A stretch of 64,000 nt of DNA, taken from Auanema rhodensis. Its lineage: Eukaryota > Animalia > Nematoda. Shown in pieces: positions 5,001 through 8,000 of this stretch (the stretch's first letter is position 1; every line of letters begins with the position of its first letter). The stretch spans positions 10,106,001-10,170,000 of the forward strand of contig OZ059894.1 of assembly GCA_964057225.1 (NCBI GenBank), given 5' to 3'. The notes below the pieces were generated by a model. That model worked only from the letters and a program-made list of their open reading frames with translations. It did not search any database and had not been told where the DNA came from. Position numbers and translations under genes: made by a program.

Positions 5001-8000
5001 TTCAAAGCATTGTTAAGACTTTGAATCACCTTGGTTGTATTAGATCTTGGAGTGACAACCATGGTAGAGGCAGTGGAAGGAGTTGTTCCGAAACGAACAG
5101 TGTTTTCGTATGCAGGAGGAGGAGTAGGCACCCCGCCGGGATAAGATCCACCAGCTTGCATTCTTCTAATGGAATTAGAAATTTCATAATCAGTGTTATT
5201 ATGACTGATATGTGCTTCATGATCTCTGGGGGTAGATGTTCTGCCATCTGTAAACAAGTACCTAAGAAGAAAACAGGAAGAAACAAAACGTACGTTCTGT
5301 GACCATACTGAAGAATGTTCCTCTGTCCACACCTTCATAAGCTTCCGGGACTTCACATATATTACGAAAATGATCTCTCTCAGTTTTCAGAGTTTCAGCT
5401 TCCTTACGAAGGTTATCAATCTGGAAAACATCATATGCATAACATAATTCAATTAAATGTCAACTTACAGTCATTTCGGATCCTTCAAAACGAGCCTTCA
5501 TGTTATAGTACGCTGCTCGGATCTTAGATAACTCTTCCTGGATCTCCATTTTTGCCTTGATTTCAGCTTTCAAAGACTTCTGAGCATCAAGAACTTCCAT
5601 TTTCGCTGTTCTTGTCATACGACGTGAACCCCAACCAGAAGCTGGAGTGTTGATGTTACCGTATGTAGCTGAAAAATATTTATCAGAAAAACGAAAAACA
5701 ATCCCTAGACGTACGCTGAGGAGTATTGCCATTTTGAATTTTAAGAGATTCAAATTCGCCTGTGATTCTTCTGGCCAAAAGCTGAAAGAAAACAACGTTC
5801 AAAACATCAGGTGAAAGAGCGTATACGACCGCATTACAATTTGATTAAAAGAGAAATGAAAAAAACATGTGATTACGATCATATCTCAACTAATGAGAAT
5901 TGAAAACAGACAGGAAAATACAAAATAAAATGAAAAATATAAACACATGAATTCCGAAAAATGAAACTAACCTCCATCTCTTCTCGAGTTGCTTTTTCTT
6001 CATTGACCCAGTTGAGAATTTCGTGAAGTTGCTGCTCACTTAAAGCTCTAGGTGATGTTTCCCTAGAAAGATAAAATTTAGATTTAAAACGATAAGATAA
6101 AAGGGGACGAACAGTTGGGTATTCAAACGAGCAATTTCAGCACGGAGATTCTCATTTTCAACGTTAAGCTGTGATACACTCTCTTCCATGGCTTTCTGGA
6201 TGCGTTCACATTGAGACTGAAAACAGAAGGTAAGTATAAAGAAGACTATTTGGCAAATCAACCTCAACGGATTTAGCTTGTTGATCTTGAGTAAGACTCC
6301 ATTGTGCCCTCTCTTCTTCAATTTTACTTCTTTGTAATCGCAATTCAGACTCTTTTTCTTCATATTGTGTTTGTAACTCAGCAAATTGTCCCTGTAACGC
6401 CCTCATGTATAAACAAAATTCGCAAAGAATAATGAACCTGATAATGCTCAACTAGTTGCTTTCTTTTCTTCTCTTCTTGAGCAACAATCTCAGCATGGCG
6501 TTCATTCAACCGTTCTAACTCTTCACCCAATCGTCTAGCTTCTTCTCCGGGATTTTCATCGCCGAAAGATGTGAGCTAAGAGAAATTATGAGAATGTTCA
6601 CACAAATACAAGATTAAAACCTGTGCTTGTAAGCCTTCCTTCACCATCTTTTCGGAACTCAATTCTTGATTTAAGCGTTCTATTTCCATTTCTAAAGTTT
6701 GCTTTGCTGCAAAAAGGACAAAGGATAAATAGCAGAAGCAAGGTAGCTGAACAAACCACTCTCAGCTTTGCGCATATCCGACTTGAGATCTTCAACTTTG
6801 GCTTGCAACTGGGTAATATCTTTCTCTTTCTCTCCTACATCCTTTTCATGTTTTCGACACTTATTTCTCTCATCAGCAAGCTCATTTGATAGCTAGAAAT
6901 CAAAGCATTGATTAAGTAAATAGGATAGCAAAAACCTCTTCAAACTCTTCTTTGGCTAAGTCGCGATGTTTAGCAGCTTCACGGCATTCACTGGTAAGAA
7001 CAGAGATTTGCTCAGCAGTCTCTTCGGACTTCTGAATATTGCAAAAACGGTTAAGGATCAAGTTAACAAGAAATTGGATGGTCGAAGTAAAAGCATACTT
7101 ATACAGCATAAAGTAATATGACAGATAGATACAAGGTAAGCGAATAGTCAAGAGAGCCACACAACACACAACGGTCACATATAGGAAAAGCGATATAATT
7201 AAAGCCATGCAAGCATAAAACACACAAAATACAGAAAAAAACTAAGAAATCGAAAATTGTTTTTCACATATATAACTTTATTTGAAAATTAAAAACTTAG
7301 GAGCACAAAACACGAAAATGGACAGACACATAAACCGATAGAACAGACACACAGACAGACACAATCACAGGGATAAAAACATAAAAATGCAACAGAAATT
7401 GACAGGCGTACGAACATAGAAATTGCTCTCTTGACTGTATTTTCAATAGAATCAGGCTTCTATTCTACATAATCATGAATTATCAGCAAACATTTCTCGA
7501 AGAAATGTTGTGACCATAGTGTGAACATGCCAGTAAACCACCTCATATGAGTAGAGACGTACTGAAGATTTGAATTATTGCAAACCACAGAAGCTCCTAT
7601 GCAAGCTAAGGCGAACAAAATATAACGTTGAAAGTGATTTGGACGTTGTCGACGTATTCGACGATGGTGAGGTTTTCTGTCCAAACTTTGCATTCGCATA
7701 CGCTTCCGTGGTTTGGGTAATGAATCTTCACTACTCTCTCGTTCAGATAGGTAATTTGCTTCAAACGAACGTGCAGATAACGGGTCCGGCGGAGGGCCGT
7801 CTATCTTAGAATTTGATTTTTGCATGCTTCTACCCCGACCACGACAGTCAATTTCGATACAAGTAAGTGGACTATCGTTTCTCACCCTTTGCATTTCCGT
7901 CTTGTCTAGAATTAACTGTCGAATCTTGTCTTTGAGTTCACGGATCTTCTTCTCCAATTCTTCAGTATTTGATTCCTTCGGTCTTTGTGAAGCTGCAGTC

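Follow-up and report, generated by a model that had tools for sequence, protein, structure and literature searches.

A candidate kinase-only isoform of the MRCK orthologue of Auanema rhodensis ending within an 854-nt intron

An MRCK orthologue with one exceptionally long coding intron

The DNA analysed here is a 64,000-nucleotide (nt) stretch of the genome of the nematode Auanema rhodensis (contig OZ059894.1 of assembly GCA_964057225.1, positions 10,106,001 to 10,170,000 of the forward strand), hereafter referred to as the window, and all coordinates below are counted from its first letter. The minus strand between 2226 and 10773 carries a gene which, judged by its sequence, is an orthologue of MRCK with the full MRCK architecture, and our subject is the 854-nt intron that interrupts this gene between 7885 and 7032. 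An earlier reading of the letters alone (the original prediction) had named the gene mrck-1 and had proposed that the intron conceals the end of a short, membrane-anchored kinase made by intronic polyadenylation. The RNA data brought to bear on this proposal were assembled Logan contigs from four runs (X1 to X4) of one study; the designation of these runs as RNA is a guess.

The gene extends from a 5′ untranslated region (UTR) exon through an ATG at 10262 and 14 exons to position 7886, and continues through a coiled coil into C1, PH_MRCK, CNH, and CRIB/PBD. In our model, its 5′ part consists of 14 exons that encode 542 residues, beginning at the ATG and ending in ...MQR. In a family profile search, the exon peptides matched the protein kinase domain. 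Against the PDB, the exon-9 peptide matched MRCK alpha at 4.9e-17, MRCK beta at ~1e-14, DMPK at 2e-11, and ROCK at ~3e-7, which places the kinase nearer to MRCK than to DMPK or ROCK. Open stretches further downstream matched C1_1 (2e-6), PH_MRCK (2e-31), and CNH (2.6e-20), all above the curated cut-offs, and PBD scored 0.0033, below its own cut-off, on a 55-residue fragment containing the 16-residue CRIB/PBD motif. The same kinase, C1, PH_MRCK, CNH, and PBD/CRIB are found in MRCK and in C. elegans MRCK-1, members of the DMPK subfamily of AGC kinases, and these matches bear out the naming of the host gene as mrck-1. The catalytic lysine is K109 here and K112 in C. elegans MRCK-1 (PMC11634028).

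The ATG at 10262 stands at the very start of its exon, and RNA contigs add 95-100 letters that map from 10674 onward, so joining a 5′UTR exon at ~10674-10773 to the ATG exon across a 411-nt intron. The RNA contigs showed no SL1-like leader at the 5′ end of the gene. Intron boundaries outside the 854-nt intron were taken from RNA joints and from frame-preserving GT..AG models. The other coding introns with RNA support measure 43-52 nt, except for two of 174 nt and 190 nt, and the 854-nt intron does stand out, as had been claimed, among coding introns of mostly ~50 nt. In the 174-nt intron (9492-9665, minus strand), which lies within the kinase domain, the frame is open over 57 of 58 codons and specifies a very hydrophobic, aromatic peptide; the intron is spliced out in the RNA contigs, and its open frame is probably due to chance (P ~0.04). 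The 190-nt intron (5782-5971, minus strand) lies in the coiled-coil region and was cleanly spliced in all four RNA runs.

Upstream of the 854-nt intron is exon 14 (7886-8026, minus strand), the last exon that would be common to both isoforms. It encodes coiled coil ending in ...TEMQR, is joined to the preceding exon (8026>8074) in 4/4 RNA runs, and ends at the donor G|gtgaga (7886/7885). The next frame-preserving acceptor, aatattcag|AAG, leads into exon 15 (6936-7031, minus strand), a frame-preserving model of the first exon unique to the long isoform, with contig cover in X3 alone at a depth of ~2. Past the donor, the kinase frame remains open for 141 sense codons (7463-7885), up to a TAG at 7462-7460. 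Translation confirmed this extension, which had been the core of the original prediction, together with the serine/proline (S/P)/charged linker, basic clusters, and hydrophobic segment that it was said to encode. The GU-rich, UTR-like stretch and the AATAAA poly(A) signal (7277-7282, minus strand) that had been noted beyond the stop are likewise present, the former preceding the latter. The distal intron (7032-7299, minus strand) would be removed only in the canonical long isoform. No Rfam family and no other gene was found in the 854-nt intron, and no repeat copy or paralogue of it exists elsewhere within the window; a nested non-coding RNA or other gene was rejected as an explanation.

An open frame of this length is not readily attributed to chance. 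Four first-order composition models gave a probability of 2.3e-4 to 5.1e-4 for 141 open codons, and the stop-free stretch at 8080-7463 (206 codons) is the longest in all six frames of the whole window. At the other 18 donors of the gene, read-through stays open for only 1-57 codons. Using codon log-odds trained on 826 RNA-supported codons of the MRCK gene versus its introns, we obtained +0.44 bits per codon for the tail in frame (+0.57 over the first 95 codons and +0.16 over the last 46), ~0.1 bit of which is due merely to the absence of stop codons. The two other frames of the tail scored -0.10 and -0.09, the remainder of the 854-nt intron scored -0.57 to -0.65, and genuine exons left out of the training scored +0.41 to +1.28. 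The GC content of the tail is 42%, versus 28-33% for intron DNA, and is ordered GC1 > GC2 > GC3, as in the exons of the gene. The low probability, taken together with the exon-like codon usage and GC content, would be difficult to account for if the frame had neither been under selection nor had a long coding history, and we rejected a chance open frame. On these measures the stretch looks like coding DNA, and the resemblance is clearest as far as the end of the hydrophobic segment.

RNA contigs within the intron

The RNA contigs skip short introns at CT..AC boundaries, that is, GT..AG on the minus strand, and therefore represent spliced RNA of that strand. A 799-nt contig of X3 runs unspliced over the donor from 8026 to 7627, extending 259 nt into the intron, with four upstream introns removed (deduced from the length of the contig). 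Similarly, a 507-nt contig of X1 covers 7588-8026 and then jumps from 8026 to 8074; one upstream intron is removed, and the contig continues 298 nt past the donor. The donor is thus bridged in two runs, with far more than 31 nt on either side. Other contigs span 7304-7858 in X2 and both 7303-7730 and 7869-8026 in X4, with smaller ones at 7300-7580 (X1) and 7399-7594 (X3), such that the coding sequence of the tail and the proximal UTR are covered in 4/4 runs. The original prediction had called for transcripts that read through 7885 and end near 7260. Processed transcripts with their upstream introns removed do cross the 5′ splice site at 7885, and coverage stops at 7300-7304 in three runs (X1, X2, and X4) and at 7399 in the fourth (X3).

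The part of the 3′UTR lying under RNA contigs therefore extends over 7300-7459 (minus strand), and the contig boundary falls 18-23 nt upstream of the AATAAA. This boundary agrees with cleavage near 7255-7265, given that coverage usually falls away toward the ends of transcripts. None of 7028-7299 lies under RNA contigs: the bin 7028-7221 has a depth of 0 in 4/4 runs, and depths in the adjoining bin, 7222-7415, match exactly contigs that end at 7300-7304 (7399 in X3). In an index search, the words of 7032-7295 were represented at 0.00 in the RNA runs of the same study, versus 1.00 in nine DNA runs from three studies. DNA runs filed under two other organism codes (B and C) also contain 100% of the sampled words of 7032-7295; such near-identical DNA under other labels could reflect strains, or mislabelled or mixed samples.

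In the same RNA contigs, all introns of ~50 nt and those of 174 nt and 190 nt are cleanly removed. Since the distal intron is absent from RNA while the other introns are spliced, the contigs are explained neither by intron retention nor by nascent RNA or DNA carry-over, and we rejected both simple intron retention and DNA contamination. What the contigs contain is a transcript that ends inside the intron, with the distal intron missing from RNA. The proposal of intronic polyadenylation has accordingly gained its read-through and its intronic end; a cleavage site or poly(A) tail was not observed, as contigs cannot show ends.

A further element of the original prediction was an optional 98-nt intron (7465-7562, minus strand) within the extension. 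The gtacgt...atgtag pair is indeed in the sequence, and contigs from 4/4 runs are collinear across it, so the candidate intron is unused in the assembled RNA.

Per-contig depths differ along the gene, at ~34-38 over 4700-6500 (the C1-proximal, 3′ part; ~35 for the 3′ third), 3-6 over the kinase part in 7300-10325 (4-6 for kinase part and tail), and 0-3 over exons 15-17 (6640-7027), which are covered only in X3. This contrast would fit a separate 3′ end in the intron, but the values are per-contig means and we do not rely on them. It could reflect 3′ bias, or a kinase-less transcript from an internal start beside a short, kinase-only one.

The predicted short kinase and its tail

The predicted short isoform has 683 residues (542 common and 141 unique; ~78 kDa). 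From an N-terminus with the capped-helix bundle, it would run through the kinase, the AGC tail and its 14-residue motif, and a coiled coil of ~100 residues into the 141-residue tail, and would lack the rest of the coiled coil together with C1, PH, CNH, and CRIB. The gene model thus upholds the earlier description of the product as a kinase with a short coiled coil and none of the C1/PH/CNH/CRIB modules. In DMPK-family kinases, the active dimeric state is maintained by the N-terminal capped-helix bundle together with the C-terminal tail, and not by regulatory domains (bioRxiv 10.1101/2022.03.11.483953). By analogy with these dimers, which are active without regulatory input, we infer that the short isoform would be catalytically competent.

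The tail begins with an S/P/charged linker, followed by basic clusters, the hydrophobic segment, and 39 further, aromatic-rich residues. Its make-up can be summarized as a disordered part of ~83 S/P/charged residues, a polybasic patch with a charge of +12, and ~55 hydrophobic, helix-prone residues. The polybasic region (7643-7714, minus strand), consisting of KPRKRMR and a 12-residue cluster, has a net charge of +12 over the 30 residues that precede the hydrophobic segment, and is similar to nuclear localisation signals or lipid-binding patches. The hydrophobic segment itself (7580-7624, minus strand) is 15 residues long and corresponds to residues 630-644 of the 683-residue isoform. A single-sequence AlphaFold2 (AF2) model shows a confident helix for the exon-14 coiled coil, leaves tail residues 4-83 unstructured, and places low-confidence helices at 84-104, 108-124, and 127-140; at the hydrophobic segment the predicted local distance difference test (pLDDT) score is ~55-69.

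With the optional 98-nt intron removed, the tail was to have, in the original prediction, a classic tail-anchor geometry, and that claim was not supported. Hydrophobicity was judged on simple scales, as opposed to a dedicated transmembrane predictor. On the Kyte-Doolittle (KD) scale the 15-residue run has a mean of 2.38, and windows of 19-21 residues fall to KD 1.55 to 1.18, with summed Hessa free energies of +4.9 to +7.9 kcal/mol (best 19-residue window: KD 1.55, Hessa sum +4.85 kcal/mol), values that are marginal to unfavourable for a transmembrane helix. The tail departs from two sequence features of classic tail anchors, because its run of 15 residues is shorter than the ~18 or more hydrophobic residues of such a helix, and because 39 residues follow it in the assembled RNA form, where ~30 or fewer would be expected. 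Removal of the 98-nt candidate intron would cut the stretch after the helix to 10 residues, but this shortening splice was seen in none of the four runs. The tail could still be anchored by a short or hairpin-type element, or bind peripherally by way of a polybasic and hydrophobic surface, and the basic clusters could equally serve as a nuclear or nucleolar signal. Membrane anchoring and a DMPK-equivalent function are accordingly best treated as hypotheses, with modest support from the sequence.

Weighing the isoform against its alternatives and known systems

We consider it probable, at roughly 0.7, that the 854-nt intron contains an alternative composite terminal exon and that a kinase-only MRCK isoform is made by intronic polyadenylation. 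An intronic-polyadenylation isoform is well supported by the RNA contigs of one study, and isoforms with composite terminal exons made in this way represent a well-known kind of mechanism. When the donor at 7885 is left unspliced, the transcript would continue through the 141 in-frame codons, the TAG, and a GU-rich 3′UTR of ~200 nt, with cleavage and polyadenylation most likely just after the AATAAA at 7282-7277, at about 7255-7265. The resulting mRNA would be translated into the 683-residue kinase with its unique tail. Devoid of C1, PH, CNH, and CRIB, the short kinase could not be positioned through these modules by Cdc42 or lipids, and the tail, with its basic patch and hydrophobic helices, may instead move a constitutively dimeric kinase to another compartment or membrane.

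Several observations weigh against this interpretation. The RNA support consists of contigs from a single study, from which poly(A) tail, cleavage site, strand, and abundance cannot be read. Among 15 of the 24 joints, the canonical joint 7886>7031 did not appear, so that the contigs give no isoform ratio. The coding signal of the last 46 codons of the tail is weak (+0.16), and the AF2 model is of low confidence (mean pLDDT 57.5). Nor did the tail show any relative: a word-indexed search of 5.8 billion clusters returned no homologue, an exhaustive phmmer search of 1.84 billion representative proteins of any length returned none at E <= 0.001, there was no match in Pfam or NCBIfam, and a scan of metagenome contigs with exon 14 plus tail gave 227 pattern stretches and 0 relatives. 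With conservation unproven, selection on the tail peptide is likewise unproven. From these searches, the public proteomes in the protein library contain no recognisable version of the tail, in an MRCK isoform or otherwise; protein libraries omit unannotated intron sequence, so that absence there is not proof of absence in relatives. A metagenome scan with the conserved exon 9 yielded 11 loci, all of them distant kinases (identity of <=58% with the exon peptide and of 28-53% across the kinase), which were useless for synteny. In an ESM Atlas feature search, the clusters nearest to the tail were those of vertebrate IEX-1/IER3 (~156 residues), with scores of 0.75-0.77, which is chance level and demonstrates no kinship.

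The failure to find a homologue also lends itself to a different view, in which the transcript is real and the tail has no function of its own: the transcript would be a by-product of slow splicing of the single long intron, or would matter only by truncating the protein or lowering full-length output, and the tail would be young and lineage-specific. Intronic polyadenylation frequently gives products that are truncated or do not code for protein (PMC10960005). Disorder is predicted for most of the tail, and its last third has a weak coding signal. However, a 141-codon open frame has a probability of only ~3e-4, and codon usage and GC content in the tail are exon-like and very unlike those of the neighbouring intron, so that we judge a functionless tail unlikely. 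Much less probable still is that there is no distinct isoform, and that the contigs derive from pre-mRNA with some or all introns still in place, from carried-over genomic DNA, or from chimeric assembly with an unrelated nested transcript. Contigs show neither single molecules nor their ends, a contig that crosses two units does not prove a single transcript, and the designation of the runs as RNA is a guess, all of which would allow for such an origin. Against it stand the clean removal of the ~50-nt, 174-nt, and 190-nt introns in the same contigs, the end of coverage at 7300-7304 in three runs, the distal 270 nt that are absent from all RNA runs and present in DNA runs, and the lack of any Rfam family or other gene in the intron. 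Taken together, we regard this explanation as highly improbable.

The last alternative accepts the isoform and takes its tail to be a true tail anchor, making the product an organelle-anchored, functional equivalent of DMPK, with the optional 98-nt intron providing the classic geometry. It can point to a hydrophobic helix preceded by a strongly basic patch, as on the cytosolic side of a membrane, and to an overall layout, with a kinase and a short coiled coil followed by a hydrophobic helix at the C-terminus, that matches descriptions of DMPK (PMC2778554; bioRxiv 10.1101/2022.03.11.483953). We nevertheless find it doubtful, given that the hydrophobic run is only 15 residues long and longer windows are unfavourable, that 39 residues follow the run and the 98-nt intron stays unspliced in 4/4 runs, and that the tail has no sequence similarity to those of DMPK and is modelled with low confidence.

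The likeness to DMPK is architectural. Vertebrate DMPK isoforms A-D are tail-anchored and of similar size (~630 residues, versus 683 here), and in both cases the C-terminus is set by alternative RNA processing (PMC2778554). However, DMPK is a gene of its own whose tails arise by alternative splicing, whereas here the tail would come from intronic polyadenylation inside an MRCK gene; compared with DMPK tails, it also has a shorter hydrophobic run and 39 residues beyond that run. Orthologues of DMPK occur only in tetrapods (bioRxiv 10.1101/2022.03.11.483953). Orthology to DMPK finds no support, as the kinase is of the MRCK type and the tail is unrelated. Of the earlier suggestion that the isoform parallels or prefigures DMPK, the similar overall layout is what stands, and ancestry is not supported; the resemblance would be convergent architecture at most.

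The MRCK-1 described so far is one long protein whose coiled coil measures 55 nm and which carries a C1-PH-CNH-CRIB module, whereas the isoform predicted here halts after ~100 coiled-coil residues and continues into a tail without relatives. We found no mention of mrck-1 isoforms, short ones included, in the searchable literature. A precedent of another kind is C. elegans daf-2b, a truncated insulin receptor isoform that arises from an alternatively spliced transcript (PMC10234397). As here, the transcript of a signalling gene is alternatively processed so as to keep one functional half. However, it is the ligand-binding half that daf-2b retains, at the expense of the kinase, whereas in the present case the kinase would be kept and the targeting and regulatory half lost, and the added peptide is unusually long (141 residues).

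The most far-reaching interpretation is that a nematode lineage devoid of DMPK arrived on its own at a DMPK-like "short ruler" by way of its MRCK locus. Through intronic polyadenylation, a lineage-specific polybasic/hydrophobic membrane anchor would take the place of the 55-nm coiled coil and of the Cdc42/lipid module, giving a constitutively active dimer near an organelle or nuclear membrane, and perhaps a major kinase-bearing transcript of the gene in the sampled material. We offer this as a speculation that is unlikely to hold in full.

Worm MRCK-1 has been studied as a single long protein, and has often been probed by means of C-terminal tags, degrons, and CRIB deletions (PMC11634028), none of which would reach a kinase-only isoform that ends in exon 14. 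If the tail is not conserved, we would be dealing with an ordinary, lineage-specific truncated transcript. Otherwise, the locus would be a case in which an unusually long (141-residue), exon-like peptide without relatives was recruited via intronic polyadenylation. In the molecular-ruler view of the DMPK family (bioRxiv 10.1101/2022.03.11.483953), the isoform would represent a very short ruler, derived from the gene that also makes the 55-nm one, and a single gene with both a long and a very short ruler, each with its own anchor, would put that model to a natural test.

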